Sequence record: MZ443769.1
Strand: one strand, 5' to 3'
DNA length: 64,000 nucleotides
In this document: positions 26,171 through 58,797 of the stretch, one piece after another
Layout: each line of letters starts with the position of its first letter
How positions within the stretch are numbered: position 1 is the stretch's first letter
Position numbers and translations under genes: made by a program
The notes under the pieces: generated by a model
The model's database searches: none
Told to the model about the DNA's origin: nothing
What the model saw: only the letters and a program-made list of their open reading frames with translations

Positions 26171-26184
26171 ACGCTGAGGAGCGT
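26171..26184 (+). promoter_or_regulatory. RBS hairpin with GAGG loop
   Basis: ACGCT-GAGG-AGCGT. Confidence 0.65.
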
Positions 26185-26187
26185 ATC

Positions 26188-26631
26188 ATGACTGTATATC
26201 ACATCTCAACTCTGACTTCCCCAGAAGACTTCCTTGAAGCGCGTTTTGGCCACATGGAAAACCTCGTTACTAAAATCAAAGAAGCGTTGAATCGTCCTGA
26301 TATCGAAGTGTACTTAGATGCGGACGACGGGCAGATGCTCGAAGAAGCAAACACAGAAGGTCCAGACCAGAAGATTGACGATAGCCTGATCAACGTTCAC
26401 ATTCGTTATGCAGGTATGTCATTCGATGAATCGACTGAGAAAGGTGTGTGGGATATTCTGCTGGGCGTTCCTCATGTTGATAACGACATGGGCGACTGGA
26501 CGAATTCATACACGCTGTTCATTCTCGATGAAGACATGGACGCTCTTGAGGAAGTTGCGATTGAAAACGGAAATCCTCATATGTTTGAGACTATCGTTGA
26601 TCGCATTAACTTCTGGTTACCTAAACTGTAA
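26188..26631 (+). CDS. acidic hypothetical protein (147 aa)
   Basis: GAGGAG SD. Confidence 0.8.
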   Translation: MTVYHISTLTSPEDFLEARFGHMENLVTKIKEALNRPDIEVYLDADDGQMLEEANTEGPDQKIDDSLINVHIRYAGMSFDESTEKGVWDILLGVPHVDNDMGDWTNSYTLFILDEDMDALEEVAIENGNPHMFETIVDRINFWLPKL

Positions 26632-26633
26632 TT

Positions 26634-26693
26634 GATTTGTGAAGGGCCTTCTCTGAGGGCTCTTTGAAAATCTAACCTAAGCTGAGGAGCTTA
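26634..26693 (+). repeat. intergenic repeat copy 1 (10-bp hairpin + GAGG-loop RBS hairpin)
   Basis: GATTTGTGAAGGGC...CTTTGAAAATC...TAAGCT-GAGG-AGCTTA. Confidence 0.75.
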
Positions 26694-26696
26694 ACA

Positions 26697-27023
26697 ATGT
26701 CATCATCAACTGAAATCACTTTCTCTTTCTCTTCTCTGACTAGCCTTGAAGTTGTGACAGGCAGTAGTGCTGTTGCCGACTATATGGGCGTGGCTGCGAA
26801 TCAGAAGAAAACGTTTAGCAACAAAGAAGCGTTGGACCTGATGCAGAACAGCAACATCATTAGCGCGTTGTCTCGCTTTGATCAAGCGATTGTCAATCTG
26901 CTGATCGATCAGCAAGAGAGCCACGAAGAACAGCGCAAGCATTATGTCGAACTTGCTCGTGGTATCGATCGTCCTGAAGATGTCCATGCAGGCGTGTATC
27001 TGACAATCAGACACTGCCGCTAA
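26697..27023 (+). CDS. hypothetical protein (108 aa)
   Basis: GAGGAG SD. Confidence 0.75.
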   Translation: MSSSTEITFSFSSLTSLEVVTGSSAVADYMGVAANQKKTFSNKEALDLMQNSNIISALSRFDQAIVNLLIDQQESHEEQRKHYVELARGIDRPEDVHAGVYLTIRHCR

Positions 27024-27086
27024 GATTTGTGAAGGGCATTCTAGCGAGTGTCCTTTGAAAATCACATAACCCGTTCTGAGGAGAAC
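27024..27086 (+). repeat. intergenic repeat copy 2
   Basis: GATTTGTGAAGGGC...CTTTGAAAATC...GTTCT-GAGG-AGAAC. Confidence 0.75.
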
Positions 27087-27090
27087 AAAC

Positions 27091-27447
27091 ATGTCTGCTA
27101 CTCAACTGCCTATCGACGCTCGCGCTTTTGATGACCTCGATAACATCGGCTTTTTGCATATCACTAACTGCCTGTCGATTATGCTTTCTCGTGGCGATTT
27201 AGAACTCGTCACTGATATTGCAGATCGCACAGTCACTGTTAAGTACCGCACTGGCGCTGTGAACAAACTCGGACACGGACTCATTGTCCTGCGTTTCCCG
27301 TCAGAAGTGCTTCAATCGGATATTCTCGAAGACTTCGAAGTGACCGTTGATAAGAATATTGTGATTCTTATCGAACGCCAGCACAGTTCAGACGCAACGT
27401 TCCAGCGCATTGCCGGCGTGATTGAAGGTCTGATGTACAAACTGTGA
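27091..27447 (+). CDS. hypothetical protein (118 aa)
   Basis: GAGGAG SD. Confidence 0.75.
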   Translation: MSATQLPIDARAFDDLDNIGFLHITNCLSIMLSRGDLELVTDIADRTVTVKYRTGAVNKLGHGLIVLRFPSEVLQSDILEDFEVTVDKNIVILIERQHSSDATFQRIAGVIEGLMYKL

Positions 27448-27494
27448 TTGTTGCTTGCAGGTTCTTACGAGAGCCTGCTGTCAACATAACCCAC

Positions 27495-27508
27495 ATGCTG
27501 AGGAGCAT
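27495..27508 (+). promoter_or_regulatory. RBS hairpin with GAGG loop
   Basis: ATGCT-GAGG-AGCAT. Confidence 0.65.
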
Positions 27509-27511
27509 ACA

Positions 27512-27931
27512 ATGATGAAATTCCCAACACGCGGCCAGACTTACACACTGCGTCAAATTCTGCTTGAACTGCCTTTACGTGATTCCGCGTTCTTGCGTTT
27601 CTACCCGACTAAAGTTCGTTATGTCGGATCAAGTGAAGCAGATATTCAAGTCATTCAGACTTCTGCATTGAGCGACGAGCATTTGCTGCTTGACCCTAAG
27701 TGGGAAAACAGTGAGTGGACATTCGTCTAAGAGACTTACGAGTGGATTCCTATCTTCCGCGCAAAAGATAATGCAGCAATCGAAGCGCTGTGTATTATCG
27801 AAGCTTCAACCGAGTCATTCCATCGTAACAACGGGCACATGCACGTATACCCAAAAGGTATGCAGTTCCCGCAGTACGAACCTTATGATGAAACAGTTCA
27901 CGCCAGCTATCTTGAGCGTGTAGGCGAATAA
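27512..27931 (+). pseudogene. gene interrupted by a single in-frame TAA (27728-27730)
   Basis: Same frame continues 66 sense codons (ETYEWIPIF...ERVGE) to TAA 27929-31, then a terminator. Confidence 0.65.
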
Positions 27932-27937
27932 CAAAAC

Positions 27938-27969
27938 AGGGATGCTCACAAAGGTGGGTGTCCCCTTTT
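27938..27969 (+). terminator. rho-independent terminator
   Basis: GGGATGCTCAC/GTGGGTGTCCC stem then CTTTT. Confidence 0.7.
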
Positions 27970-27991
27970 ACTTTCTGTTGAGGAAAAAGCT

Positions 27992-28501
27992 ATGACAAAT
28001 AACACCAGTGCTATCGTTCTGCGTCTCATGACTCACGTTCATCTGATGCACAGTGTAGAGCAGGTCTGCATCATGCAGGACGTTGTACGCATCCGTCTGT
28101 CTGGGATCATGTATGACGTGCGCACAAACGGCCATACGTTCTTAGTGCATGAGATTGAATCCTCCTGCATGTCATCAACTAAGGCAGCGCGAGACCTTGA
28201 AGAGAAATTGAACGGCGAGCGTGAAGCGGTACCTGTGCACGGTTTAAAGATTCAACCACACTGGCCACCGATTATCGACAAATACACCCAGTCAATGTCG
28301 CCTCAGTACATTCAAGAATACACGGAACATTGTGGTGGGCCTGACTTAGATGATCTCAAAACAAAAACTATCTGGGTAAGATCTCACTTGCTCGAATTCT
28401 GGCGAGCGAATGGTCTGAACAATTTCCTCGACCACGTACTCTTTATCGAAGGTCGCATTCGCCGCGACGAGCTGTTCAAAGAAATCCAAAAGCACTGCTA
28501 G
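27992..28501 (+). CDS. hypothetical protein (169 aa)
   Basis: GAGGA SD. Confidence 0.75.
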   Translation: MTNNTSAIVLRLMTHVHLMHSVEQVCIMQDVVRIRLSGIMYDVRTNGHTFLVHEIESSCMSSTKAARDLEEKLNGEREAVPVHGLKIQPHWPPIIDKYTQSMSPQYIQEYTEHCGGPDLDDLKTKTIWVRSHLLEFWRANGLNNFLDHVLFIEGRIRRDELFKEIQKHC

Positions 28502-28527
28502 TTCACTCATAACAAAAGAAGGACCAA

Positions 28528-28836
28528 ATGAAAACATTTCCGCTTAACTTAGCGGGCTTTGTTGTAGCGATTTATAGTCGCATTAAGTACCGTAGGGAAA
28601 GATTCAAAAACGAAATATTGGACGCGATTATAAAATTGAATCAACGAGACCGTAACCTGTTGTTCATCGTGTTTGATTTAGAAAACAATGACAGTGGCAT
28701 AACTGCATTGTCTAACATGAGTCGCAGACAGCTTGCTGACCTGTGTGCTCAAAACTACGTGCGTGTCACAGGCAGAGATTGGCCAGTGTACCACACATTC
28801 AACCAAGTAGTATCTGCAACTAGAAGATGGGGTTAA
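28528..28836 (+). CDS. hypothetical protein (102 aa)
   Basis: AAGGA SD. Confidence 0.7.
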   Translation: MKTFPLNLAGFVVAIYSRIKYRRERFKNEILDAIIKLNQRDRNLLFIVFDLENNDSGITALSNMSRRQLADLCAQNYVRVTGRDWPVYHTFNQVVSATRRWG

Positions 28837-28838
28837 TC

Positions 28839-29279
28839 ATGAGCGATATAGATATTCTGATCCGTGAATACCAACGGGCGTATCTGAAAGCGGAAGCATC
28901 ACACTGGGGAAACGTTGCGTACCACGTTGAAGATCTTACTGAGTGTTCGATCTACATGCGATTCCGTTCAGGCAGACAAGCTCTGTGGCAGCGACCCGTT
29001 CTTGTACTCGCAACAATCGACGTGAAAAATCCTGGCAACGGTTTCTTCTCCAAGCTTCTCGCTGAAACGAAAGCCCTGTGCAAAGAACGCGACTGGGTGC
29101 TACAGCTTGAGAACGTGTTGACTCCGCAGTTTCGTCGCTTCCTATCTCGTGGTGGATTCACACCGCAAGGCGTAGACTCTGATTCTGATCATGGCAGTAT
29201 GTACTGGTTTCATGATGAAAGCATCCTCAGCACAACACCTATGCGACCTGAGTATTTTGAATTGATCAAACAGCTCTGA
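28839..29279 (+). CDS. GNAT-like acetyltransferase
   Basis: LATIDVKNPGNGFFSKLL (motif A-like) and FLSRGGF (motif B-like). Confidence 0.5.
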   Translation: MSDIDILIREYQRAYLKAEASHWGNVAYHVEDLTECSIYMRFRSGRQALWQRPVLVLATIDVKNPGNGFFSKLLAETKALCKERDWVLQLENVLTPQFRRFLSRGGFTPQGVDSDSDHGSMYWFHDESILSTTPMRPEYFELIKQL

Positions 29280-29295
29280 ACATTGATAACCACCC

Positions 29296-29325
29296 AAGCA
29301 CTGGTCTGAAAAGGTCAGTGCTTTT
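29296..29325 (+). terminator. terminator with GAAA loop
   Basis: AAGCACTGGTCT-GAAA-AGGTCAGTGCTT then TT. Confidence 0.7.
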
Positions 29326-29346
29326 CCTACATTACTGGAGCACTAC

Positions 29347-30387
29347 ATGACTAACGAAACTGGCATGATGATTGATGAAGATGTTCTTGATTACCTCGAA
29401 GACAGACTCACGCATGAGATGCAAGACATTACCAATGCGTTGAACAACCTGCTGTATGCAAACCGCGCTGTGTTGCAGATATCCCACCTCGAATCAGATG
29501 AAGACATTGCTGCACTGTCTCACGCTGACCTTACGCTGCTGCTCAAGCTGGCTGACCCGAACAGTTCTTACGACAACGTTACTCTGTCTAACAGAAAGAT
29601 TCTCGGTCTTGTGTTGAATGCTCTGAACGTTGTAGAGTATCGCCTGCCTACTTATCAATCCACTCTACTGGAGAAACGTGCCTTTGAGCTAAATGAAGTT
29701 CTCATTCTCGACAAGACTGTCGGCCAAGGCGTTATCTTCTCTGCTGCATGGAACTGGCTGCACGGCATTCAAGATGTGAATCTCGATCAGATTGGATTCA
29801 GTGAAGCGCCTGAGACAGATGGTATCTATCTCGTACTTGATGAACATAAGCAAGTGCGTATGGGCAGACTGTTCCACAACGCAGATGATGGACTTTCGTT
29901 TATTGAGCAACATGCAAATGAAAGTTCTTTGTGGCACAAGGCAGAAGAACTCGACGAAGATGAATTGCCGATCTGCTTACTCACTAACTGGGTTCTGGTT
30001 ATGCCTGAAGTAGTACCTACTGTACGTGCAACAGGTGCACCGCTTAAAGCTGCTACTGACTGCACTCGCATCTATGCGTTCGTGACAAACCTCAGCCCTC
30101 ACGTTAAGACTGAACTTGTCACACACTTCGCAGGCATTCTTGATCGTGAACTTAATTCCGTTCAAGCGATAGGTCGTCTGTCTGAACTTGACTGGCAGAA
30201 CGCAGCCCGCGCAGTTGCTGACGATGTGCTGTTACGCCTGAGTGACCGTACATCTTGGTCTACAGAGAAAGCGTGGCCGTGTTTCGTTGCTGTGTTAAAG
30301 GAGTTGGGCTTCAACTTCGAAACCCATCAGTTCGATGCTCAATATGAGTATGGTGCTAACGATGAAGAACATGATAGCGATTCGTAA
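29347..30387 (+). CDS. hypothetical protein (346 aa)
   Basis: GGAG SD. Confidence 0.8.
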   Translation: MTNETGMMIDEDVLDYLEDRLTHEMQDITNALNNLLYANRAVLQISHLESDEDIAALSHADLTLLLKLADPNSSYDNVTLSNRKILGLVLNALNVVEYRLPTYQSTLLEKRAFELNEVLILDKTVGQGVIFSAAWNWLHGIQDVNLDQIGFSEAPETDGIYLVLDEHKQVRMGRLFHNADDGLSFIEQHANESSLWHKAEELDEDELPICLLTNWVLVMPEVVPTVRATGAPLKAATDCTRIYAFVTNLSPHVKTELVTHFAGILDRELNSVQAIGRLSELDWQNAARAVADDVLLRLSDRTSWSTEKAWPCFVAVLKELGFNFETHQFDAQYEYGANDEEHDSDS

Positions 30388-30583
30388 AAAGTTATATTTG
30401 AATGTGACAGCCTTAGTGCTGTCCTTCATTCTTATCACACTGCTTTGTTGGTCTGACCTAGACGTGTTTGCTTTTGCATACGCTATGCTGCTGGGTCTAT
30501 CTCTATTCTGCGCAGGCGTTGCTGTTGGCCGCGTAGAAAAAACAATTGAAGAACTATTTGAAAAGGAAGATCAGAATGGCTAA
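30371..30583 (+). CDS. small membrane protein (2 TM)
   Basis: Two hydrophobic segments; overlaps both neighbours. Confidence 0.6.
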   Translation: MIAIRKKLYLNVTALVLSFILITLLCWSDLDVFAFAYAMLLGLSLFCAGVAVGRVEKTIEELFEKEDQNG

Positions 30584-31121
30584 GTCACTCGGCGTATACA
30601 TGACATACGTGTTACGTCACAGTCCGCAATCAATCGGTATTGCTATGGACACTCAGGGTTGGGTATCAGTTTCTGATTTCTTGCAGAAGCAACAATGGCA
30701 CAAGACAAAGACTGTCTCTCTGGAAATGCTGATCGAAGAAGTGGCGAATGACGAGAAAGGCAGATTCGAGTTGAACACAAGTCAGACCAAGATTCGTTGT
30801 GTTCAAGGCCACTCTGTTGAGCATGTGATTCTTAACTTGCAGGACTACATGCCTGAAGATTACCTGTATCACGGTACTGCTGAAAAGAACTTGGCAATCA
30901 TCTTACAGGAAGGTCTGAGCAAGATGCGCCGCAAGCACGTTCACATCTCTGACAACCAAACTACTGCAATGCAAGTAGGTCAGCGACACGGCAAACCTGT
31001 TGTGCTTTCAGTTGACGCCGCTACTATGGCTTCTCATGGATATAAGTTCTACCGTGCAGAGAACGGAGTCATTTTGATTAACGAAGTACCTCCACGATAT
31101 CTTAGGATTGCTCATGAATAA
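30576..31121 (+). CDS. kptA: RNA 2'-phosphotransferase Tpt1/KptA family
   Basis: LRHSP, GWV, RCVQGHS, LYHGT, RKHVHIS, GQRHG, NGV.L..VPP motifs. Confidence 0.9.
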   Translation: MAKSLGVYMTYVLRHSPQSIGIAMDTQGWVSVSDFLQKQQWHKTKTVSLEMLIEEVANDEKGRFELNTSQTKIRCVQGHSVEHVILNLQDYMPEDYLYHGTAEKNLAIILQEGLSKMRRKHVHISDNQTTAMQVGQRHGKPVVLSVDAATMASHGYKFYRAENGVILINEVPPRYLRIAHE

Positions 31122-31512
31122 AAGATACTATCAATATCTAGGTGGCCGTCGATTTGTCAGATCGCCTAGCGGTACTTGGTACTTCGTGTTTCAACGCGAT
31201 GGTGCTATGGTAACGAACAGCAACGGAACAACGTTCTACCGTACAGGTTCAGAAGTGTGGAAAGATATCACGATGACTGAACGTAACCAACTTGAACGCA
31301 TGTTCGTGGAATCGAGACAAGCCGAACGCAAAGTAATGAAAGAGGAAGATATGCACTGGCTGACCCTGATCCGTGTTCTTATCAATGACTCAATGATTGA
31401 AAGCAACGAAAACAAGGCCGAATTGGCAGGGCTTTTAGATGGGCTGCGCATAGCGTCATATCAAGAGAAGCTGTCTGATCTAGACACATTATTGGACAAA
31501 ACGTCTGTATAA
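31114..31512 (+). CDS. hypothetical protein
   Basis: AGGA SD before ATG 31114. Confidence 0.65.
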   Translation: MNKRYYQYLGGRRFVRSPSGTWYFVFQRDGAMVTNSNGTTFYRTGSEVWKDITMTERNQLERMFVESRQAERKVMKEEDMHWLTLIRVLINDSMIESNENKAELAGLLDGLRIASYQEKLSDLDTLLDKTSV

Positions 31513-31536
31513 AGTGTAAGCACAACCTGTTATACT
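31504..31536 (+). promoter_or_regulatory. possible promoter (shortened early-class variant)
   Basis: TCTGTATAAA...CAACCTGTTATACT resembles both ends of the 53435-53490 promoter. Confidence 0.35.
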
Positions 31537-31572
31537 ATCAATGAACGCTAGACATTCTGTTTAGCTATTTAC

Positions 31573-32949
31573 ATGAGGAACATGTACATGAAAAAGATCA
31601 AACACACTTTCCGCCTTGCTGACTTGGTTCACATCAAACCAAACACAAAGAAAACCCGCAGTCACTTCGAATCCGATGTTGATGCAATCGTCGTTGGCCG
31701 TGATGATGAAGAAGACAAGTATGACCTTCACATTAAAGGTGTTGGTGTAAGTGCTTGGTACCCAGCAGAAGACCTGATTCTGATCAAACACGATCAGAGC
31801 GAACTGCTTGACCAGTGGGAATCCGGCAACTACGGGAAAAAGAAGCGCAAGATTCCTAAGACGCTGCGTAACTTCACGGCGATTCTGCCTGTGACCTGCA
31901 ACGCCGATTGTTCGTTCTGTCCAGAGAAAGAGATGGAAACGAAAGCTGGCCAGAAAGAATGGCAAGACAATCTGATCGCCTCTATTCTTGCGCAGGAACA
32001 TCGCTTCGACCACGTATCAATCAGTGGCGGCGAACCTACTCTGCGTCAGAAATTCCTGTTCGAAACGATCGACCGTATTCTGTCTGAGACTTCAATCAAG
32101 AAAGTCGGTCTGACTTCTAACGGCCAATTCCTTGAGAAGCATAACAACACTCTGGACTTTCTTGATCGTAACACAACGCTTGAGATGACGAGCAAGCTGT
32201 CGCATCTGAATATCAGTATGCACTCATTCAACCGTGACCGTGCAAACGAAATCATGGGCGTGAAGTATCAGCACAGTCTGGAGGAGCTTGCCCGCTTCCG
32301 TCGTCAGTTAGGTCGCAACGTTAGTTTCCACATTAACTTTGTTCTGAATGAAAAGTCCGATGACTATCAGAAAGAGTTTCTGGCAGCACAAGCTTTCATG
32401 AAAGAGCATCCGTACATTGATGTTGTATTCCGTGTTGACTACAACAACAAAGAGCTGTCGCAAGAGCTGCGCGACTACGCTATGTCCGTTGAAGAGTATC
32501 ACGCACAATCTGCTGATGCTGTTAAACGCCGCTTGAAGTTCAAGGCGCCTAAAGTATTACGTCCTAAGCTTGTTCAGAAGTTTGATGGCGTCTTCGGTCA
32601 TAACGAAGATCACGAAGAAGGTGCTTGGACAACGGGCTGTCCGTCTTGCTTCACTCACTGTTCTGATTCCGTCAACAATAGTCATGCGTACTTGAAAGCG
32701 AGTTCATACGAACCGAATGAAGATGAAGATGAATACACTGAGATGGTGTTTCACATGGACGGTAAGTTGTACTTCGATTGGTCGCGTGTGGATGTAGTGC
32801 CTGCTAAGAAACCGAAAGCTAAGAAAGTTGTGGCGAAAGCTAAGAAAGAAAAGAAAGAAAAGAAAGAAAAGACTAAACGCGATTGTGTGTACTACCCGCG
32901 TTCTGGTTGTTCTTATGCTCGTACTGGCGTAGGCTCTTGTCAATTTTAA
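31573..32949 (+). CDS. radical SAM domain protein
   Basis: CNADCSFC (CxxxCxxC), SISGGEP, LTSNG, LNISMH motifs. Confidence 0.85.
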   Translation: MRNMYMKKIKHTFRLADLVHIKPNTKKTRSHFESDVDAIVVGRDDEEDKYDLHIKGVGVSAWYPAEDLILIKHDQSELLDQWESGNYGKKKRKIPKTLRNFTAILPVTCNADCSFCPEKEMETKAGQKEWQDNLIASILAQEHRFDHVSISGGEPTLRQKFLFETIDRILSETSIKKVGLTSNGQFLEKHNNTLDFLDRNTTLEMTSKLSHLNISMHSFNRDRANEIMGVKYQHSLEELARFRRQLGRNVSFHINFVLNEKSDDYQKEFLAAQAFMKEHPYIDVVFRVDYNNKELSQELRDYAMSVEEYHAQSADAVKRRLKFKAPKVLRPKLVQKFDGVFGHNEDHEEGAWTTGCPSCFTHCSDSVNNSHAYLKASSYEPNEDEDEYTEMVFHMDGKLYFDWSRVDVVPAKKPKAKKVVAKAKKEKKEKKEKTKRDCVYYPRSGCSYARTGVGSCQF

Positions 32950-32959
32950 GGGGATAAAA

Positions 32960-34656: not shown

Positions 34657-34914
34657 ATGGCTGTAGGCTTTGGACCTGCTGATGGTGTTCAAGATACCAT
34701 CCACGCAAACTTGATGAATGAACTTGATCGCGTTCGTTCAGAACTTCAAGGTAGTGGTAGCGATTATTGCCATGACTGTGACGCAGAGATTCCAGTCATG
34801 CGCAAGCTTGCAATGCCGAACGCTATCTACTGTGTAAGCTGTCAATCAGATCACGACGGCAGCGCTCACGTTTCCTATAATCGACGTGGTTCGAAAGACT
34901 CACAGTTGAGGTAA
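34657..34914 (+). CDS. ybiI: DksA/TraR C4 zinc-finger protein, YbiI-like
   Basis: CHDC...IP..R..A.P....CVSCQ; C-terminus YNRRGSKDSQLR as in enterobacterial YbiI (recalled). Confidence 0.85.
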   Translation: MAVGFGPADGVQDTIHANLMNELDRVRSELQGSGSDYCHDCDAEIPVMRKLAMPNAIYCVSCQSDHDGSAHVSYNRRGSKDSQLR

Positions 34915-50757: not shown

Positions 50758-50806
50758 GCTTCTTCCGATTCACACTCAATCATACCTAACATTGTAGGGA
50801 ACAAAA

Positions 50807-51238: not shown

Positions 51239-51247
51239 GGTGATATC

Positions 51248-51547: not shown

Positions 51548-51555
51548 CTATCAAG

Positions 51556-51611
51556 TCTGCACAAAATAGGCTGAAATAGCGGTATCAATAAAAGCCTCAA
51601 TATGATACAAT
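51556..51611 (+). promoter_or_regulatory. early promoter (upstream element + extended -10)
   Basis: TCTGCACAAAATAGGCTGAAATAG-26 nt-TACAAT with TG. Confidence 0.75.
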
Positions 51612-51645
51612 AGAAGCGTAGCAGATGCTGCGCTTTTTACTTTAT

Positions 51646-51659
51646 AGTCTGAGGAGACT
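51646..51659 (+). promoter_or_regulatory. RBS hairpin with GAGG loop
   Basis: AGTCT-GAGG-AGACT. Confidence 0.65.
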
Positions 51660-51663
51660 CGTT

Positions 51664-52128
51664 ATGTTAGAACCAATCAAATTCAATCAGTCTGAAATCG
51701 ATCTGCAAGACGCAATCATGGAAGTAGCTGTGAGCAACGTTATCAAGCTGACACCTAACTGGACTGATATTTGTCTTGCTGCTGCCCGCCTGTATCTGAC
51801 AACCTGCGATATGCTTAACGGAACAATTCCTGAAATCCGTTTCATTCATAACGGAAAGTCTACTCGCCTTGAGTACCGTCTCAAAGAAGTTGAAGGTACC
51901 GAAGAGTTTGAAGCTGACGCTGCGGACATTGAAAAGCAGAAAGCAATTCTCGACGCGATGTTTGACACTGCTGAGAAATCAGAAGACGGATTCAGTTACG
52001 GCGACTTGCTGATCTGTTCGGGTCGTTTGTTTATGATTGGTTATGACGGTCTTGCTGGAACCAAAGACGTTCTGAAATTCCGTCACAACAAAAAGAACTT
52101 CACTATGCACCTTGTTGAGGCCAAATAA
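51664..52128 (+). CDS. hypothetical protein
   Basis: GAGGAG SD before ATG 51664. Confidence 0.75.
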   Translation: MLEPIKFNQSEIDLQDAIMEVAVSNVIKLTPNWTDICLAAARLYLTTCDMLNGTIPEIRFIHNGKSTRLEYRLKEVEGTEEFEADAADIEKQKAILDAMFDTAEKSEDGFSYGDLLICSGRLFMIGYDGLAGTKDVLKFRHNKKNFTMHLVEAK

Positions 52129-52761
52129 ATGGAAACCTATTTCGTACTCAAACGTCACATGCGCGATAGCCGCAGCCTTGCATTCTTCCACGACGATAAG
52201 TGTCTGGCGATGTTCTCAACACGCTTGATGCAACGTGTTCAAGAAATTCTTGAGCTGCCTACAGTTATGTCCACAATCGTTTGGGCAGACGACAAAGAAA
52301 CGCACAACCGTCTGCTGATCGTTGACCGCTCATTCATAACACGCGACAACGAAATGCGCACTAACTTTGAACTGTCGATGATCACTTCGCCTGCTGGCCG
52401 TCCTGATTATTCGATACCTGTTGATGTGTGTCGTATGCACGACGGCATCACACCGTACATCAAAGAGATTCGCATTGAACAGGCGATTGCTCAATTCATG
52501 CTGAAAGAGATTCAAACTCTGCTGCTGTCTGAACCTAAAGAAGACGACGAAGACATGTATGAGTCTCTTTTAGACGGCGACGAAGTATCGGACATAGAAT
52601 TCTCTCCTGAGTTCCTGCGTCAGGAAATTGCCGACGGCTATCGCACAGAAGACTACATGCTTCGCCTGAGCATTGAAGACGTATTGGAGATACACGACAA
52701 AGAAGTCGGAGTATTCATGCCAGAGCACGAAGAACAAGACCAAACACCTTTCTATTATTAA
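52129..52761 (+). CDS. acidic hypothetical protein (210 aa)
   Basis: Abuts the upstream stop. Confidence 0.75.
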   Translation: METYFVLKRHMRDSRSLAFFHDDKCLAMFSTRLMQRVQEILELPTVMSTIVWADDKETHNRLLIVDRSFITRDNEMRTNFELSMITSPAGRPDYSIPVDVCRMHDGITPYIKEIRIEQAIAQFMLKEIQTLLLSEPKEDDEDMYESLLDGDEVSDIEFSPEFLRQEIADGYRTEDYMLRLSIEDVLEIHDKEVGVFMPEHEEQDQTPFYY

Positions 52762-52772
52762 GGCAGTACAGA

Positions 52773-52964
52773 ATGAAAACAACAAGTGACCTTGTCAAAG
52801 AACTCAAACAACATGGCGTCTTGATTATTGAAGACCACATGAAACACACTCTGCCTGATTTAACTTTCACGCTTGATTGTATGTGTATCACTTATTCGAA
52901 GCGTGAAATTGAAAGTACCAAACTAGGCCGTGTTGTTCGTATTCGAATGATGGCAACACACTAA
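52773..52964 (+). CDS. hypothetical protein (63 aa)
   Basis: TAAGG SD. Confidence 0.6.
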   Translation: MKTTSDLVKELKQHGVLIIEDHMKHTLPDLTFTLDCMCITYSKREIESTKLGRVVRIRMMATH

Positions 52965-52976
52965 TACATGCGGTTT

Positions 52977-53034
52977 GCCTGACGTGCCTCACACTCAACC
53001 ACGCATTTGCGGGTGGCATAGTCGGGCTCTTTTT
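52977..53034 (+). terminator. long hairpin/terminator
   Basis: GCCTGAC/GTCGGGC outer stem with inner stems, then TCTTTTT. Confidence 0.55.
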
Positions 53035-53074
53035 GAAATGTGTTTGTTTGACGCGCATTACATAAAGATAAACC

Positions 53075-53088
53075 AACAGGAGGCTGTT
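53075..53088 (+). promoter_or_regulatory. RBS hairpin with GAGG loop
   Basis: AACAG-GAGG-CTGTT. Confidence 0.6.
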
Positions 53089-53427
53089 ATGAACAGATTT
53101 ACCGCAGTATCGAAAGACGCACAAATCGTTTTGCTGAGTTGCGCTCTCGCAGGCACGCTGAACATTCTAGGCAGAGAACATCAAGACGGCGGAAAGCAGG
53201 TATTCGAATTCACGCTTGCTAAAATTGGCCTCGCACCAGACGAGTTCAAATTCATTCTTGATCAAATGTCGTCTGATGTGGAAGAGGAAGTCAGATCTGT
53301 TACTGGTCTGCCTGACGAAGACGAAGACACCGCGTCTGATTTAGACACTATGGAAGACAGCCCGAACAAAGGCGAATACGATACAAGCCGCATGAACAAA
53401 GATGGCTGGGAAGATTTAGACCGCTAA
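53089..53427 (+). CDS. acidic hypothetical protein
   Basis: AGGAGG SD before ATG 53089. Confidence 0.75.
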   Translation: MNRFTAVSKDAQIVLLSCALAGTLNILGREHQDGGKQVFEFTLAKIGLAPDEFKFILDQMSSDVEEEVRSVTGLPDEDEDTASDLDTMEDSPNKGEYDTSRMNKDGWEDLDR

Positions 53428-53434
53428 TGTGAAG

Positions 53435-53490
53435 TCTGCATAAAACAGGCTAAAATAGAGGTTGAGACATATATCAACACCTGTTATACT
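53435..53490 (+). promoter_or_regulatory. early promoter (upstream element, -35, extended -10)
   Basis: TCTGCATAAAACAGGCTAAAATAG, TTGAGA-17-TATACT with TG. Confidence 0.8.
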
Positions 53491-53498
53491 TATTAGAC

Positions 53499-53619
53499 AG
53501 CGAGACATATATGTGTTGCTGAGTTCGATTGATAGCTTTTAGCTGTATGTGAACTTTTCCCCCGCATACAGCTCTTTTTAAAGTGACTTGATTGAGGTTG
53601 CTTTAAAAAGACCAGCTAT
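53499..53619 (+). ncRNA. candidate sRNA / structured leader
   Basis: Three hairpins between two tandem promoters; no ORF. Confidence 0.4.
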
Positions 53620-53643
53620 TTGATGTATGCAAAAAGTTGGACG

Positions 53644-53680
53644 AAATAGCGGTTGTGCAAAATGCTCTGCCTGCTATACT
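53644..53680 (+). promoter_or_regulatory. early promoter
   Basis: AAATAG, TTGTGC-16-TATACT with TG. Confidence 0.7.
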
Positions 53681-53725
53681 TATATCTCTAGCGCAATATC
53701 GCGCACAACGTAGTATCTCATATAC

Positions 53726-53741
53726 AATACTGAGGAGTATT
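53726..53741 (+). promoter_or_regulatory. RBS hairpin with GAGG loop
   Basis: AATACT-GAGG-AGTATT. Confidence 0.7.
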
Positions 53742-53745
53742 AATC

Positions 53746-55326
53746 ATGGCTATCGAAACTAACACAAATCTGGTTGGCAAAACTATCGTTCTGTTGGACG
53801 GCACTAAAACTAAAATCACTGATGCAATCGCGTCTGGTTATAAAGTGAAAAGCCGCACAGCCCGCGTATCAACTCGTTGTGTAGTTAAAGACGGCGCTCA
53901 CTTCCGTGAAATCGAGCGCATGAACATGAGCCAGTTAGAAGATACAGGCGAAGGTTACGTGAAAGTGAAAGACGCGAAAGCGACCAAGTCTGCTAAGACC
54001 GCGAAAGCTGAAAAGCCAGCTAAGACCGCGAAGACAACCAAAGCAGAAAAGAAACCTGCTAAGCCGTCTAAGAAAGACGAACCTGCTCCGAAAGTTCGCA
54101 GCAAGAAAGAAAAAGAAGCGAAGCAACAAGAAGATTACTTGAGCCTAGCAACTGCGATCATTAAAGGCGGCAAGAAAGTTGCGCCTGTCGAAATCGAAGC
54201 AACCGACGCTGAACTGACAGACGCGATTGCAAAACGTCTGGTAGATGTTCTCGAAAATACCGAAATCGCCCGTGTAGCTGCTGATAACAAAACGCCGATC
54301 GCAAACGCAATCGCAATCACGTACGGCGCTGAGTTCGCCGAAGAAGCTAACGTGCTTCAAATCACGTTGAACCTGCAATACGCTAAGCCTGTCGTATCAG
54401 CACCTGAGCCTGAGCTGGACGAAGCTGTTGCTCGTCGTGCTGCTAAACTCGCCGCTAAGAAAGTGGGCAAGGTGTTGGCGAAAGCAATCAAAACTGCATT
54501 CGACCTCGAAGATGCAAACGACCTGCTGCCTGGTACCGTGTTGCTCAAAGCAGAAGAAGAGTTTATCTTCTGCGGCGAAAGCGCGAAACATGCAGGCAAA
54601 GCGCTGCTGTACAAAACAGCCGACGATAAGTTTGCGTCTGTCGCTGCTGATGCTCTGACTGAATACGAAATTGTTCAGGAAGAAGCTGAGGCAGAAGAAG
54701 AGGAAGAAGAGGAAGAAGAGGAAGAAGAGGAAGAAGAGGAAGAAGAGGAAGAGGAAGAGGAAGCTGATGAAGACCTCGATGACTCTGACGCTTATTCGTA
54801 CATCGCCGTTGATAAAGACCAGCTTGCACTCGTTAACAAGAAAGTGACTGCTAAGTATCACGCTGCAACCGCTGAACGTTTCGGCGTTAGCGAAGAAGCT
54901 CTGGTCCCTGGCCTTGTCGTTACAGACGGCGACACAACGTTTGCTTATCTGGGCTTCGATAGCAAAGGCGGTATGCTCGTCATTGACAACGAAGCCGAAG
55001 ATCAAGATGTTCTGTGCTACTCAAAAGCAGACATTAAATCTCTGGTAGACTTCTCGCCAGTAGTTGGCGAAGAGGGCGAAGATGATTCGGACGACGAAGA
55101 ATCTGCTGATGACGAAGAATCTGCTGATGACGAAGAGGAAGAAGAAGCAGACGAAGAAGAAGAAGCGGATGATGACTTCGACTTCGGCTCTGATATCCCG
55201 TCAGAAGATCTTGAAGACCTGACCGCGGATGAACTGCGTGACCGTGTTGTTCACTTAGGTCTGTCTACTCAGAAGAAAGCAGATCGCATGGACGAAGACG
55301 AACTCCGCGCTCTGCTGACTGAATAA
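53746..55326 (+). CDS. acidic multi-domain protein with poly-Glu tract
   Basis: GAGGAG SD; K/A-rich segment, E23 run, D/E blocks; N-domain shared with 55412-56647. Confidence 0.85.
   Translation: MAIETNTNLVGKTIVLLDGTKTKITDAIASGYKVKSRTARVSTRCVVKDGAHFREIERMNMSQLEDTGEGYVKVKDAKATKSAKTAKAEKPAKTAKTTKAEKKPAKPSKKDEPAPKVRSKKEKEAKQQEDYLSLATAIIKGGKKVAPVEIEATDAELTDAIAKRLVDVLENTEIARVAADNKTPIANAIAITYGAEFAEEANVLQITLNLQYAKPVVSAPEPELDEAVARRAAKLAAKKVGKVLAKAIKTAFDLEDANDLLPGTVLLKAEEEFIFCGESAKHAGKALLYKTADDKFASVAADALTEYEIVQEEAEAEEEEEEEEEEEEEEEEEEEEEEEADEDLDDSDAYSYIAVDKDQLALVNKKVTAKYHAATAERFGVSEEALVPGLVVTDGDTTFAYLGFDSKGGMLVIDNEAEDQDVLCYSKADIKSLVDFSPVVGEEGEDDSDDEESADDEESADDEEEEEADEEEEADDDFDFGSDIPSEDLEDLTADELRDRVVHLGLSTQKKADRMDEDELRALLTE
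54694..54762 (+). repeat. (GAAGAAGAG)n microsatellite encoding poly-Glu
   Basis: Six 9-nt units plus degenerate GAAGAG units, 23 Glu. Confidence 0.85.
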
Positions 55327-55336
55327 GCTGTACTCA

Positions 55337-55343
55337 CTGTAAA
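55337..55343 (+). promoter_or_regulatory. CTGTAAA motif
   Basis: Intergenic, upstream of 55412. Confidence 0.5.
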
Positions 55344-55392
55344 CTGATATGATAGCGGTCTATGATGGCCGCTATACTTTGACTAATCGCGC

Positions 55393-55406
55393 TGATTGAG
55401 GAATCA
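55393..55406 (+). promoter_or_regulatory. RBS hairpin with GAGG loop
   Basis: TGATT-GAGG-AATCA. Confidence 0.65.
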
Positions 55407-55411
55407 CAACT

Positions 55412-56647
55412 ATGTCAACTTCAAACAAAATGTTATTGAACGCCCGTGTACGTCGTCTTGATGGTACTGTTACTCACATCAACAAGATCAATACTAACGG
55501 TTATAGCACTGATGCCAAGGGGCCTCAGATACCTGTTAAGCGTCTCGTTCTTGCAGGCAAATCTTTGAAAGAGATTGAAGCGCCGTTCGCAAAAGACGAG
55601 TGCATCATCTCACAAGGCGTTACAGTCAAACTGAACAAACGCCAGCAACGTGAACTCGCAGATAAAGCGCTTGATGAAAAAGCGTTGCGTCCTGACTTCG
55701 GTAGCTTAGTGTTTATCGACCCTGACACAGGCAAAGCGACTGACGGCAAGAAAGTGAAAGTGAAAGCTGGTGCGAAAGAAAGCCTGAAAGAAACGCGCAA
55801 GCATAACAAAGAGCCGAAAGTTAAGAAAGCAGAGAAAGTTTCTGCCAAGAACGATCTGAAAGATTCGCTCGACCTGATTGACGAACGTAAGGCACCTAAG
55901 TCTGCGCTCGTTGAAATGCTCACTGCTACACTCGAAGGCGATACGACGAAAGAACAGCGCAAGCAATTCGCTGATGCGTTTGGTATTGACTGGAAAGCTG
56001 CTAAGAAGCTCGGTGGCAAGGGTATCGTTAAGCAACTCGGACGTAAAGCTGCGCAAGCCGCTGCTGACAAGCTGAATGCTACTGTGACCTCTGATGCGTT
56101 CATTAAGCAGATGCCTCCTGAGTTGAAGCGTCTGATGCGTGAAGGTTCGCTTACTCTGAACAAAACACAGATTGAGCGTGTACTGTCTGCGCTTGGTCTT
56201 GATACGAAGTTCTATGCTATCGCAATGCAGAACTTCCTGGGTAATCTGACACTGGCCATCAAGCCCGAAGAAGTGAAGACTACGCAGAAGAAAAAGAAAG
56301 CTGCACGTCCGCAATACGCGACTGATAAAGATGCGAAGCGCCGTGTAAAGAAGATGACAATAAAGCTGCTGGCGCCTGATGCGAAAGGTATGAAGACTGC
56401 TAAGGCTCATTTGAAACAGGCAAAAGCAATCTTAGCCTCTAAGCTGGGTATCGCTACAAAAGATATTAAACGCGGTCTGATTGTGTATCACAAGAACGGA
56501 GTTGATTACATGTTCGTTGCCTGTGATGTACGCGGTCCGATCTTCATCGACAAAGATGGTGACCCGGCAGTGTATACTTACGCGAACCTGCAAGACACGT
56601 TCGACTTCACACTGACGCCAACCTCTGAGCTGGACGCCGCTGTATGA
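55412..56647 (+). CDS. basic K/A-rich protein, paralogue of 53746-55326
   Basis: LDGT-x10-GY-x22-EIE N-domain shared with the upstream gene. Confidence 0.85.
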   Translation: MSTSNKMLLNARVRRLDGTVTHINKINTNGYSTDAKGPQIPVKRLVLAGKSLKEIEAPFAKDECIISQGVTVKLNKRQQRELADKALDEKALRPDFGSLVFIDPDTGKATDGKKVKVKAGAKESLKETRKHNKEPKVKKAEKVSAKNDLKDSLDLIDERKAPKSALVEMLTATLEGDTTKEQRKQFADAFGIDWKAAKKLGGKGIVKQLGRKAAQAAADKLNATVTSDAFIKQMPPELKRLMREGSLTLNKTQIERVLSALGLDTKFYAIAMQNFLGNLTLAIKPEEVKTTQKKKKAARPQYATDKDAKRRVKKMTIKLLAPDAKGMKTAKAHLKQAKAILASKLGIATKDIKRGLIVYHKNGVDYMFVACDVRGPIFIDKDGDPAVYTYANLQDTFDFTLTPTSELDAAV

Positions 56648-57033
56648 AAACATCTGAAATAGTTTTGACAGGTGTATTTGCTCAACTGTATGCGCGGCTA
56701 GCAATGGCCGCCATCAATAAAGTTCACATCTACTACATGGACTTAGCACCTGTAGTGTTCGGTGTGCAATTCAGTAAGATGGATAACTCGCAAGTAGAAG
56801 CTGTCTGGCAAATGCTGCGTATGTCCATGCAAATGGATATGCAACACAATAGACCGCCGCTCGCTGCGCTGTTTGTCAGTCGCGCTTCTGAGTTAAAGAA
56901 ACCTGGCCGCTCATTCTTCAATGAGTATGAGAAGATTACAGGAATTAAGCTCTCCTACGAAGACTGGCAGAAGCTCGTTGAAGAAGTATGGGCGCATTAT
57001 TCGATGCAAGATTTCGTTGGAGAGCAATCATGA
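56644..57033 (+). CDS. hypothetical protein (129 aa)
   Basis: ATGA overlap; PPLAALFVS...PGRSFF motif. Confidence 0.7.
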   Translation: MKTSEIVLTGVFAQLYARLAMAAINKVHIYYMDLAPVVFGVQFSKMDNSQVEAVWQMLRMSMQMDMQHNRPPLAALFVSRASELKKPGRSFFNEYEKITGIKLSYEDWQKLVEEVWAHYSMQDFVGEQS

Positions 57034-57509
57034 AAAAGTTAAAAATCAAATCGTCAATCAGTCGCGGTGGTTACAAGCCGAAGTCTGATGACGAAGCCCG
57101 CAAGCTGGTAGTTGAGTTTATTCTCGGTACTATCGGTACTGCACCAACTGTTCTGAGCCAGACGTTAGTTCTGAACGTTGCGAACTATAACTGGCTGACG
57201 TCAATACCTGATACTGCTAAGCCTACGCAATCGAATCAATCAGTGTTGCATAAAACTGTAAAAGAACTTAATGAGTTCTGTCGATTGAACAAATTTCCAC
57301 TGGGCTTACTAATTATGCCCCACACATCATCGAGTGACTATAGCGGTGATGAAGTGATAGCAATCCCGTGGAAACATGTTGCGGCGAATTCACAAAGTCA
57401 GTCCGCTGTTAATTCGATTTTCGAAACAGTGATCGCTGATGGATATCCGCAGTTCGTAGCCGATGCAAAAACTTTGCACGTAGACGTAGAGGGTAGCGAT
57501 GTTTTATGA
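57030..57509 (+). CDS. hypothetical protein
   Basis: GGAG SD; ATGA overlap. Confidence 0.65.
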   Translation: MKKLKIKSSISRGGYKPKSDDEARKLVVEFILGTIGTAPTVLSQTLVLNVANYNWLTSIPDTAKPTQSNQSVLHKTVKELNEFCRLNKFPLGLLIMPHTSSSDYSGDEVIAIPWKHVAANSQSQSAVNSIFETVIADGYPQFVADAKTLHVDVEGSDVL

Positions 57510-58779
57510 TCACGTATTCACGCATGACGAGCGGCAGGCGTTGCTGCTCCTTGCTGAATCATTCTTTCTGGTAAAAACTGAATGTCCCGACTATCTCAAA
57601 AAGTCTAAGCACTCGATTGAGATTCGACACACGATTAATCATCGTGGGAAAGAACGCCGGTCGGGTCACATTGTAACGTCATTCGTTCCGCGTATTCACA
57701 TGAGCGTTATTCAGCGTCTTGTTCGTGTGATTCGTGACGACTACGATATCCGCGCAGCACATCACCTGAGCAAGTTGTTTGAACTCGGACTCGGCGTGCC
57801 GAAGCAACGTGACATTGCACTTTACCTGAGTGACTACTCAAAAGAAGCTGACCCGAAAGGTGTGGGTATGAAGTATATCCGCAAGCTGATTAATGAGTAT
57901 CACCGCAAGTATCGTCGCAGCATGGCAGGTAGTCGCTGGATTATGCCAGCCGCGTATACTGCGAACATGATGCACATGCAGTCTTTCATTCACTTGAAAG
58001 AGAACGGTTATGCGAAGCAACTCAAAGTGCCTGATGGAATACCTGTGGTTCTCGTGTACAACAACACGAACCATGAGCGTTCTGAGTTTACTTTGTGTGA
58101 CGCATTCATGATAAGCCCGCTGGGTTTCCCTGTACCGTTCGCGCAGATTGCATTACGTCCTGAATTCAAAGCTGTGCCGAAAACGTTTTGCTCGAAAGCA
58201 CTTCGCGGTCGTGGTATGTACAGCATGGTGATGGGTGTTGTTCATTGGTCTGATACTGATTCCGTGAAGCACTTCCGCGAACTGATGGAAATTGATGCTG
58301 ATAGCTATCTGTCATTGCTCGATAGTGAACAGTACATGGACCGCCGGTCTCCTGAGTATCAAGCGCTGTGTGACAAGCGCGCCGAGTATAACGAACAACG
58401 TGTAGAGATGAATGAAGTCCTCGCTAAGTTCGGAACTACGAAGCGTATTCTTAAACCCGAGCAGCAGGCTAAGTTAGACCGCGCTCTCAAGTTCTTCGCA
58501 GACCGCAAAGACTTCCTCAAGGAGTTTGATCAGTTTGAGAAGAAAGAACAGCACAAGGCAGCGAAGCAATTCGCAGTAGCCAGTGCGCAGTTCGCAGCAA
58601 TTGACTGTGGTACTATCATGGACCGCACAACGTATATGGCGGTCAGTACGACACTCGATAAAGTTCACCACATTCTTGGGAAGTGGGGATTTACTACTGT
58701 CGATACTGTTAATGCTAGTTTGAAACACTCACTCATGACTTACGGCGAATCAAAAGCAACTCGTCGCTGGTCACTATAA
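57499..58779 (+). CDS. hypothetical protein (426 aa)
   Basis: GAGGGT SD. Confidence 0.8.
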   Translation: MFYDHVFTHDERQALLLLAESFFLVKTECPDYLKKSKHSIEIRHTINHRGKERRSGHIVTSFVPRIHMSVIQRLVRVIRDDYDIRAAHHLSKLFELGLGVPKQRDIALYLSDYSKEADPKGVGMKYIRKLINEYHRKYRRSMAGSRWIMPAAYTANMMHMQSFIHLKENGYAKQLKVPDGIPVVLVYNNTNHERSEFTLCDAFMISPLGFPVPFAQIALRPEFKAVPKTFCSKALRGRGMYSMVMGVVHWSDTDSVKHFRELMEIDADSYLSLLDSEQYMDRRSPEYQALCDKRAEYNEQRVEMNEVLAKFGTTKRILKPEQQAKLDRALKFFADRKDFLKEFDQFEKKEQHKAAKQFAVASAQFAAIDCGTIMDRTTYMAVSTTLDKVHHILGKWGFTTVDTVNASLKHSLMTYGESKATRRWSL

Positions 58780-58783
58780 CCTT

Positions 58784-58797
58784 TATCTGAGGAGATA
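58784..58797 (+). promoter_or_regulatory. RBS hairpin with GAGG loop
   Basis: TATCT-GAGG-AGATA. Confidence 0.65.

Follow-up and report, generated by a model that had tools for sequence, protein, structure and literature searches.

Why should the start sites of unrelated genes, gathered in one arm of a jumbo-phage genome, fold into hairpins whose stems differ from site to site while the loop presents the same few Shine-Dalgarno (SD) bases? The question is raised by a 64-kb stretch, hereafter the window, of the Erwinia jumbo phage pEp_SNUABM_52 (MZ443769.1, 261 kb, Sasquatchvirus Y3 species; record positions 186001-250000). The window is 98% identical to vB_EamM_Y3 (Y3), and its genes lie nearly all on the + strand and are almost all annotated 'hypothetical protein'. 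An initial annotation, made from the letters alone, had drawn attention to nine ribosome-binding sites folded as hairpins with a GAGG loop and to two copies of a further hairpin, TGCC-AAGG-GGCA. We find that these SD hairpins are real, strand-specific and confined to this genome arm. Judged by comparison between genomes, the hairpin is moreover an RNA structure under selection, and we weigh below what such a structure might do.

Hairpins with the Shine-Dalgarno core in the loop

All nine GAGG hairpins and both TGCC-AAGG-GGCA hairpins are present on the + strand (Table 1), and every string is unique except for the TGCC-AAGG-GGCA pair. The 5' arm is made of upstream sequence, and the 4-nt loop R-A-G-G (R, purine) is the first half of the SD. 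The 3' arm opens with the last SD bases (A-G) and runs through the spacer to end 0-5 nt from the AUG in all eleven, which bears out the closeness to a start codon claimed for them. From the start of GAGG to the A of the ATG is 12-14 nt in eight of the nine, the canonical SD spacing, and the sequence UGAGGAG is able to form seven pairs with the 3' end of 16S rRNA. Because this spacing is canonical, the 3' arm is itself the spacer, and initiation requires that the hairpin open. The hairpins also bear on annotation: the start given at 20834 (pEaSNUABM52_00253) has no SD, whereas ATG 20867 has a UGCC-AAGG-GGCA hairpin at the canonical distance, so the annotated start is probably wrong and ATG 20867 likelier.

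Table 1. Coordinates of SD hairpins and promoter-like units in the window (dG, folding free energy in kcal/mol; P(bp), base-pairing probability; pI, isoelectric point; D+E, aspartate plus glutamate; AD1, an Alexandravirus phage)
Feature	Position	Strand	Stem to ATG (nt)	Start codon and product	Remarks
SD hairpin ACGCU-GAGG-AGCGU	26171..26184	+	3	ATG 26188; 147 aa, pI 4.1	dG -5.5; first gene behind P26099
SD hairpin UAAGCU-GAGG-AGCUUA	26678..26693	+	3	ATG 26697; 108 aa	dG -5.2, P(bp) ~0.9
SD hairpin GUUCU-GAGG-AGAAC	27073..27086	+	4	ATG 27091; 118 aa	
SD hairpin AUGCU-GAGG-AGCAU	27495..27508	+	3	ATG 27512	
SD hairpin AGUCU-GAGG-AGACU	51646..51659	+	4	ATG 51664; 154 aa	after P51569 and stem-loop 51612-51637
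SD hairpin AACAG-GAGG-CUGUU	53075..53088	+	0	ATG 53089; 112 aa	
SD hairpin AAUACU-GAGG-AGUAUU	53726..53741	+	4	ATG 53746; 526 aa, 26% D+E	after P53639
SD hairpin UGAUU-GAGG-AAUCA	55393..55406	+	5	ATG 55412; 411 aa, pI 9.8	dG -1.9
SD hairpin UAUCU-GAGG-AGAUA	58784..58797	+	4	ATG 58802; 1010 aa, pI 4.05	
SD hairpin UGCC-AAGG-GGCA	20851..20862	+	4	ATG 20867	dG -4.1, P(bp) 0.98; 17 bits with covariance model R1; first gene behind P20777
SD hairpin UGCC-AAGG-GGCA, second copy	21648..21659	+	5	ATG 21665	
Probable extra member UACAUG-AGGAA-CAUGUA	31570..31586	+	1	ATG 31588; radical-SAM protein	AD1: UACAUG-AGGA-UAUGUA with G-U pair
Possible extra member UUAUA-AGG-UAUAA	42541..42553	+	1	ATG 42555	AD1 orthologue UUUAA-GGA-UUAAA; AU-rich, hence weaker evidence
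Promoter unit P20777	20777..20819	+			heads operon of hairpin gene 20867
Promoter unit P26099	26099..26141	+			TTCACT-17-TATAAT, 10/12, TG; heads four-gene hairpin cluster; kept in Alexandravirus
Promoter unit P47570	47570..47612	+			first gene (47642) without hairpin
Promoter unit P51569	51569..51611	+			upstream of hairpin gene 51664
Promoter unit P53448	53448..53490	+			TTGAGA-17-TATACT, 10/12, TG; drives short structured RNA, not gene
Promoter unit P53639	53639..53680	+			upstream of hairpin gene 53746

The excess of such hairpins over chance was evaluated in several ways. On the + strand of the window, five or more perfect flanking pairs are found at 9 of 100 GAGG occurrences and exactly four at none, against a chance expectation of about 0.1 (100 x 4^-5); on the - strand none of the 159 GAGG occurrences forms a hairpin. 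In Y3 (245 kb, both strands) there are 987 GAGG occurrences, with stem lengths of 0 (731), 1 (182), 2 (52), 3 (10), 4 (1), 5 (8) and 6 (3). This profile is a geometric decay to four pairs with a separate mode at 5-6 bp, and only two of the eleven hairpins in that mode lie away from a ribosome-binding site. One of these two, AAAAUA-GAGG-UAUUUU at Y3 108219-108234 (+), stands between Y3_141 and Y3_142, where the local genes are on the - strand, so that the coding strand reads AAAAUA-CCUC-UAUUUU.

We further used a null that keeps position-specific composition, in which the left flank of one gene is joined to the right flank of another with the SD aligned. For four-nt loops at 93 window genes this null expects 0.8 +/- 0.9 hairpins against 11 observed, a count reached in 0 of 1000 shuffles, and for loops of 3-8 nt it expects 3.8 +/- 1.9 against 15 observed. 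By the same null, the excess is absent from the other 221 genes of the genome. The genome-wide search for GAGG hairpins against shuffled controls, which the initial annotation had suggested, thus finds an excess far beyond chance, about 10-100-fold for the core set of eleven. Covariance model R1, built from the hairpins and run over 289 kb of phage sequence on both strands, returned no members beyond its training set, the next best score being 14 bits at the start of Y3_181. An exact scan of IMG/VR for AAGCTGAGGAGCTT was uninformative: it matched at least 117 stretches, most of them coding (K-L-R-S), and only eight matches in non-relatives were followed by an open reading frame starting with ATG, which is about what chance gives.

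Among looser candidates, those at 24217, 32960, 37271, 10138 and 34176 were dropped as not conserved in AD1. At 18578-18640 (+) the hairpin GUUAUU-GGAG-AAUAAC stands before ATG 18638, and prediction has it give way to a much larger structure (-34.9 kcal/mol), where CUGUUCUCUAAU and the SD region pair with each other and enclose an inner stem-loop. Unlike the other hairpin sites, the ribosome-binding site of 18638 is thereby predicted to be sequestered.

The genes that carry the hairpins are not a random sample of the window. The 290 kb of phage sampled contain six copies, all of them in the window, of a promoter-like unit that consists of ATAATAGGCTrAAATAGmGG, a -35-like hexamer, 16-17 nt and a TG-extended TAtAmT; Alexandravirus has kept the unit too. 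A generic promoter scan flags two of the six (P26099 and P53448) at 10/12 matches. Because the A-rich block of the unit resembles a proximal UP element, the six copies look like strong host-RNA-polymerase (sigma70-type) promoters, and hence early; they probably define immediate-early transcription units, a timing read from promoter type. Of the five first genes that follow these promoters and code for protein, four bear an R-AGG hairpin, against 7 of 94 other genes (hypergeometric p ~4e-4), and the remaining hairpin genes lie further along the same operons. The description of the carriers as early or acidic-protein genes needs qualifying: eight of the nine proteins are acidic (pI 4.05-5.7), 55412 is basic (pI 9.8), and 'early' follows the promoter type. 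Paralogy was rejected as the origin of the shared hairpins, the nine proteins being no paralogues of one another and showing no similarity beyond a weak N-terminal resemblance of 53746 to 55412.

Pairing conserved between phage genera

Orthologous start sites were taken from Alexandravirus (AD1, Alexandra and several pEa_SNUABM phages), Rivsvirus pEa_SNUABM_5, Yoloswag, Yersinia phage fHe-Yen9-02 and uncultured relatives, the most distant of these at ~35% protein identity. The hairpin is kept almost everywhere, over five related phage genera, and the sequence just upstream of it has diverged. In an alignment of 47 distinct hairpin instances (A2), some of them picked because a hairpin is present, pairs 1-4 are paired in 100% and pair 5 in 94%, with three to five pair types at pairs 3-5; the 53089 group, which MAFFT had shifted, was omitted from this count. 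The covariation score is 0.612, compared with 0.146 +/- 0.021 in shuffles (0 of 500 reach it) and at most 0.158 in controls with slid partners. For 16 orthologous leaders of 53746 (-45 to +15), RNAalifold predicts the SD hairpin as the sole helix, with two of its five pairs compensated and none broken.

The changes can be followed gene by gene. Orthologues of 26188 read AAGCU/AGCUU, pair 4 having gone from C-G to A-U, and in those of 53746 pairs 3 and 5 go from A-U to U-A. At 27512 the relatives have UAAGCU/AGCUUA (pair 4 from U-A to A-U) or UAGGCU/AGCUUA, which contains a G-U wobble. Pair 5 of the 51664 orthologues may be A-U, U-A, C-G or U-G and is broken in one, leaving four pairs only. The stem at 27091 is UGUUCU/AGAACA in orthologues, with an AAGG loop in pEa_SNUABM_39, and in pEa_SNUABM_17 it is swapped as a whole to UAAGCU/AGCUUA, a three-pair change. 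The AD1 orthologue of 21665 likewise carries a wholly different stem, AUGCU-AAGG-AGCAU instead of UGCC/GGCA. The 26697 hairpin of pEa_SNUABM_23 has an AAGG loop on an unchanged stem. Distant forms at 53746 are UAAUUCU-GAGG-AGAAUUA and UAUUUCU-UAGG/UUGG-AGAAAUA, and orthologues of 58802 have 5 or 6 bp, the fHe-Yen9-02 form being AUCUUU-AGG-AGAGAU. The hairpin of 53089 and that of 55412 are each unchanged across eight genomes; that of 55412 is lost in pEa_SNUABM_5, Yoloswag and fHe-Yen9-02. The proposal that the stems differ in sequence while their pairing is selected, first made from one genome, now holds between genomes as well, as the compensatory changes and the covariation score indicate.

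What stays constant is narrower than the invariant GAGG loop first described, which is right for the nine hairpins of this genome and wrong for its relatives. The loop is AAGG in the two further hairpins of this genome and in some orthologues, TAGG or TTGG in distant 53746 orthologues, and AGG or UUGG in fHe-Yen9-02, with yet other loops at the neighbouring gene in a distant clade; no genome shows a concerted loop change. The invariant columns of the A2 alignment are A10, G11 and G12 alone, that is, the SD bases AGG. In 45 of the 47 instances the loop ends in GG and the 3' arm opens with AG, giving the SD core GGAG. Exceptions in the window are 53075 (GG then CU), 55393 (GG then AA) and the two UGCC-AAGG-GGCA hairpins (GG then GG). 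The closing pairs seen are CU/AG and also UU/AA, CC/GG and AG/CU.

G-U pairs are confined to the sense strand, and every instance lies on the coding strand at a fixed SD-to-AUG spacing. Given these sense-only G-U pairs, the fixed position and the strand, we regard the hairpin as an RNA-level element. It has the features generally looked for in a conserved cis-regulatory RNA structure, namely compensatory pairing across homologues together with strand and position specificity.

Possible functions of the hairpins

The folding energies suit a gate that a ribosome could open. The isolated hairpins have a stability of -1.9 to -5.5 kcal/mol, GC-poor stems being longer, and the predicted unpaired probability of the SD core in the loop is 0.4-0.99. 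The duplex of SD and anti-SD is calculated at -8.4 to -10.4 for eight of the nine genes and at -6.7 for 55412; the genes of the genome average -6.5 (s.d. 2.3). As controls for the folding of the start region we used 43 other window genes with a spacer of at least 20 nt and equal GC. Between -35 and +35 the nine hairpin genes fold slightly more weakly than these controls (-8.9 versus -10.7 kcal/mol, p = 0.045) and with a smaller spread (s.d. 0.7 versus 3.3, Levene p = 0.009), and the cost of opening -20 to +13 is 7.05 (s.d. 0.96) versus 7.79 (s.d. 2.77; Levene p = 0.026). This narrower and slightly weaker folding suggests that the hairpin adds no structure, and that it swaps a variable structure for one defined weak element. 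The 15 nt before the hairpins contain 12 G in 135 bases (8.9%, against 23.6% G in the window), the linker being C/A-rich.

These data allow us to propose, tentatively and as the reading we favour, that the hairpins are self-contained, context-independent ribosome-binding modules in a set of about eleven genes. The hairpin would fold fast and locally as the RNA emerges, with its G-rich SD core left unpaired, and this folding would prevent capture of the SD and spacer by neighbouring or coding sequence; it would probably also guard the A/U-rich spacer from single-strand nucleases. The G-poor, C/A-rich leader before the hairpin could serve as an unstructured standby site for the 30S subunit. From there the anti-SD would nucleate on the loop and displace the weak stem (-2 to -5.5 kcal/mol) to give a 6-7 bp UGAGGAG:anti-SD duplex, and displacement of the stem would free the spacer and the AUG. 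The outcome would be a uniform, strong start signal for genes that need immediate translation in a recombining, cassette-like region. We favour ribosome-binding modules because the invariant bases are SD bases only, the loop varies, the stabilities fall in a narrow window, folding is uniform, the context is one of cassettes and the genes are unrelated.

Several observations weigh against this proposal. The device is not used by the highly expressed late genes or by the other 221 genes, and its use by one gene class only means that it is not a general high-expression trick and suggests regulation. The closing CU...AG recurs in 45 of the 47 instances. Stem sequence is conserved beyond what pairing needs, in that the 53089 and 55412 hairpins, identical in eight genomes, precede proteins that are 30-67% identical. 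A tetraloop cannot pair fully with the anti-SD unless the stem melts, so that 'display' of the SD may amount to nucleation only. Finally, the energy comparison covers nine genes only and its p-values are marginal.

The restriction to one gene class and the strong conservation of stem sequence keep alive the idea of a regulon, which the initial annotation had put forward; its alternative, a device that would hold phage ribosome-binding sites active while host translation is shut off, is conceivable. It is possible, though not probable, that the hairpins are operators of a post-transcriptional regulon, in which a phage factor or the host CsrA/RsmA reads the SD loop on its stem. Such a factor might clamp early translation shut, as T4 RegA and RNA-phage coat proteins do, or cut at the loop-stem junction between GG and AG, as T4 RegB does. 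Alongside the bias towards first genes (4/5 versus 7/94), operators would account for the strong conservation of the loop and the closing pairs and for stem primary sequence kept beyond pairing need. They fit less well with invariant bases that are the SD bases only, with GAGG and AAGG side by side in one genome and TAGG, TTGG and others in distant relatives without concerted change, and with the different closing pairs at 53075, 55393 and 20851.

SD hairpins that are numerous and differ in their stems have a known precedent in the CsrA-type regulators (PMC7652899), and a Csr/Rsm system is active in the host genus (PMC7652899, PMC5109040). Like CsrA/RsmA sites, the phage hairpins are short stem-loops at the ribosome-binding sites of numerous genes that are unrelated, and they combine a conserved, purine-rich loop with stems that vary. 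CsrA/RsmA, however, recognises a GGA that is single-stranded in a loop, typically a hexaloop A(N)GGA. Its consensus from in-vitro selection (SELEX) is RUACARGGAUGU, with ACA and GGA invariant and stems mostly of <=4 bp, and as a rule the dimer bridges at least two GGA sites, spaced 10-63 nt from each other (PMC7652899). The consensus here is nnnCU-GAGG-AGnnn. Its loop is an R-A-G-G tetraloop; in 45 of 47 instances the A of GGA closes the stem, so that GGA does not lie fully in a hexaloop; its stems are of 5-7 bp, no ACA stands upstream, and the G-poor 15 nt of leader before the hairpins hold no second GGA.

T4 RegB cuts GG^AG in the SD of early mRNAs, at sites that are essentially unstructured and have an A-rich 3' consensus, structure being reported to protect against it (PMC3014915). 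Its targets have GGAG or GGAU in the intergenic start region of an early gene. The hairpin genes would share that gene class, early as far as the promoters tell, and in seven of the nine hairpins a GGAG lies across the loop-stem junction, with the GG/AG boundary exact. If the closing U-A frayed, 7/9 would read C[UGAGGA]G, leaving GGA unpaired and pairing the fourth G; under this condition RegB is reported to cleave efficiently by itself (PMC3014915). Unlike RegB targets, 55393 has GGAA and 53075 a shifted GGAG. The bases after GGAG are moreover those of the variable 3' arm (CGUAUC, CUUAAC, AACAAAC), which are predicted to be paired and depart from the RegB 3' consensus GGAGRAYARAA.

Of the 41 NCBIfam families that the 99 window proteins hit, the best 25 include no recognisable RNA-binding regulator and no regB-like, CsrA, Hfq or RNase family. 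This is a weak negative, which a novel factor would escape, and it leaves the other 240 proteins and the PHROG RegA/RegB profiles unscreened. The basic 411-aa protein 55412 was considered as a candidate RNA-binding factor, and its AlphaFold2 model (8-sequence alignment; mean predicted local distance difference test score 57, predicted template modelling score 0.31) was too poor for a fold search. We are inclined to doubt the fuller proposal, in which a phage or hijacked host factor would read the SD at the loop-stem junction, clamp or cleave GG/AG and so time the shut-off of about a dozen immediate-early proteins in at least five genera of 250-270 kb phages. Were there such a factor, it might be a structure-specific functional analogue of T4 RegA or RegB, a likeness that we hold just as doubtful.

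It is unlikely that the hairpins mainly set the fate of the mRNA, whether by protecting the ribosome-binding region or a processed 5' end from RNase E-type attack or by marking a processing site, with any effect on translation being secondary. 5' stem-loops are established stabilisers of bacterial mRNAs. In front of each SD hairpin stand, in this order, a stable stem-loop (terminator-like or 5'-terminal) and the single-stranded, G-poor A/C-rich linker, and the RNA-end enzymes of the phage (RNA 2'-phosphotransferase, cyclic phosphodiesterase, NUDIX) suggest that RNA damage and repair matter. However, separate 5'-terminal hairpins already sit directly behind the promoters, the stems are weak, and protection alone does not explain why the SD falls in the loop or why the distance to the AUG is fixed. 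A role in mRNA stability, improbable as we judge it, would be compatible with ribosome-binding modules.

It is highly improbable that the hairpins arose by chance or through composition, from A/T-rich sequence flanking a G-rich SD, or that they are inverted repeats acting at the DNA level, for instance as a protein operator or hairpin promoter: the AU-rich candidates at 24217, 32960, 37271 and 10138 are probably chance, the null expecting about three to four such, but for the core eleven the enrichment, the compensatory changes across genera and a strand bias that extends to G-U pairs and to the distance from ATG rule both out. Half-sites that differ between sites also fit no single dimeric DNA-binding protein, and both an N4-type hairpin promoter and a dimeric DNA operator were rejected.

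Other start-site and loop structures were compared with the hairpins. The initiator hairpin of the MS2 coat gene (de Smit and van Duin) is a weak hairpin that is tolerated, a strong SD and standby binding letting the 30S subunit catch transient openings. The present elements resemble this threshold-stability hairpin in being weak, local and placed over the start region; in MS2 only one gene has it and the loop holds the AUG, whereas here a family of genes, conserved across genera, has the SD there. With the MS2/PP7 operators and the boxB of lambda and P22 they share a 5-7 bp stem of free sequence under a small conserved loop. Those operators and boxB occur once or twice per genome and have a bulged A or, in boxB/nut, a 5-bp stem and a GNRA-like pentaloop with boxA nearby and away from the ribosome-binding site, none of which is seen here. 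A boxB/nut antitermination hairpin was rejected on account of the GAGG tetraloop, the eleven copies and the 0-5 nt to the ATG. So were an RNA thermometer (fourU, ROSE), which needs the SD paired in a stem and not its core in a loop, and a split-SD enhancer hairpin, the SD lying inside the hairpin here and the linear SD-to-AUG spacing being already canonical. Phage T4 also has hairpins at start regions that set translation efficiency, inhibitory at e, soc, 49 and I-TevI and enhancing through a split SD at genes 25 and 38 (PMC3014915). There the SD or AUG is buried in a stem, or a hairpin lies between the two; here the loop holds the SD core, and the 3' arm is formed by the spacer.

Structured start regions as such are thus well known (PMC3014915), previously gene by gene or as CsrA targets; here they form a family of about eleven members with one promoter class in several jumbo-phage genera. 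Hairpins with the SD in a tetraloop are apparently a translation signal not described before: a literature search returned no account of phage early genes with SD-in-loop hairpins, neither the PaBG nor the AD1 paper mentions promoters or hairpins, and the 64-kb window has no Rfam match at gathering score on either strand. As self-contained modules, the hairpins would be a natural design for context-independent translation, a source of ready-made parts and an insight into how shuffled early genes are expressed. As operators, they would point to a new post-transcriptional regulator in a phage group considered for fire-blight biocontrol, whose early genes are nearly all without assigned function. 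Either way, the hairpins and the six promoters delimit a coherent and directly testable early regulon.

Intergenic cassettes and gene products

In the four-gene cluster behind P26099 the intergenic regions (26632-26696, 27024-27090 and 27448-27511, +) are built as cassettes of GAUUUGUG, an 8-9 bp stem-loop, GAAAAUC, the C/A-rich linker and the SD hairpin. The large stem of the cassette itself covaries between phages (GAAGGGCA/UGCCCUU, GUUGAGCA/UGCUCAA and GUAGAGCA/UGCUCUA). In pEa_SNUABM_17 the SD hairpin of one cassette has been replaced by that of its neighbour, which suggests cassette exchange. PeSL cassettes of T4-type phages combine an early promoter with a terminator-like stem-loop in hyperplastic regions. 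The present cassettes recall them in being repeated between small early genes and in the signs of exchange; unlike here, the definition of PeSL includes no SD hairpin.

Behind P53448 lies a candidate early small RNA of ~85 nt (53492-53590, +) with a pair of hairpins, of which the second has an 11-bp stem and, with CUCUUUUU after it, makes a terminator. Its minimum free energy is -26.3 kcal/mol (z = -3.0), and it has no Rfam match.

PHROGs and NCBIfam place the products of the hairpin genes in 'unknown function' families only. Two of them are very acidic and occur in five genera: 58802-61834 (+) encodes 1010 aa with pI 4.05, 24% D+E and 5% lysine plus arginine, and 53746-55326 (+) encodes 526 aa with 26% D+E and long poly-Glu runs. 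Sequence searches of the PDB with both proteins gave nothing below E = 0.02, and NCBIfam contains no relatives of either. The similarity between 53746-53920 and 55412-55580 (+) is a common N-terminal domain of ~55 aa (28% identity, E = 0.002 in a small database), which also occurs alone in an unrelated 232-kb viral contig. The fourth hairpin gene of the cluster, 27512-27931 (+), is shortened by a premature stop to 72 codons, compared with 139 in Y3 and 134 in AD1, and a second fragment of 30 codons is annotated downstream.

Elsewhere in the window, 30576-31118 (+) encodes an RNA 2'-phosphotransferase (Tpt1/KptA, E = 2e-58), 9615-10079 (+) a putative cyclic phosphodiesterase named in the Y3 annotation only, and 34657-34911 (+) a DksA/TraR zinc-finger protein. 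The radical-SAM protein of 31588-32946 (+), with MoaA-like and viperin-like matches, has its own conserved SD hairpin. Taken together, the four genes, RNA-related or regulatory, hint at phage RNA repair and RNA-polymerase modulation.

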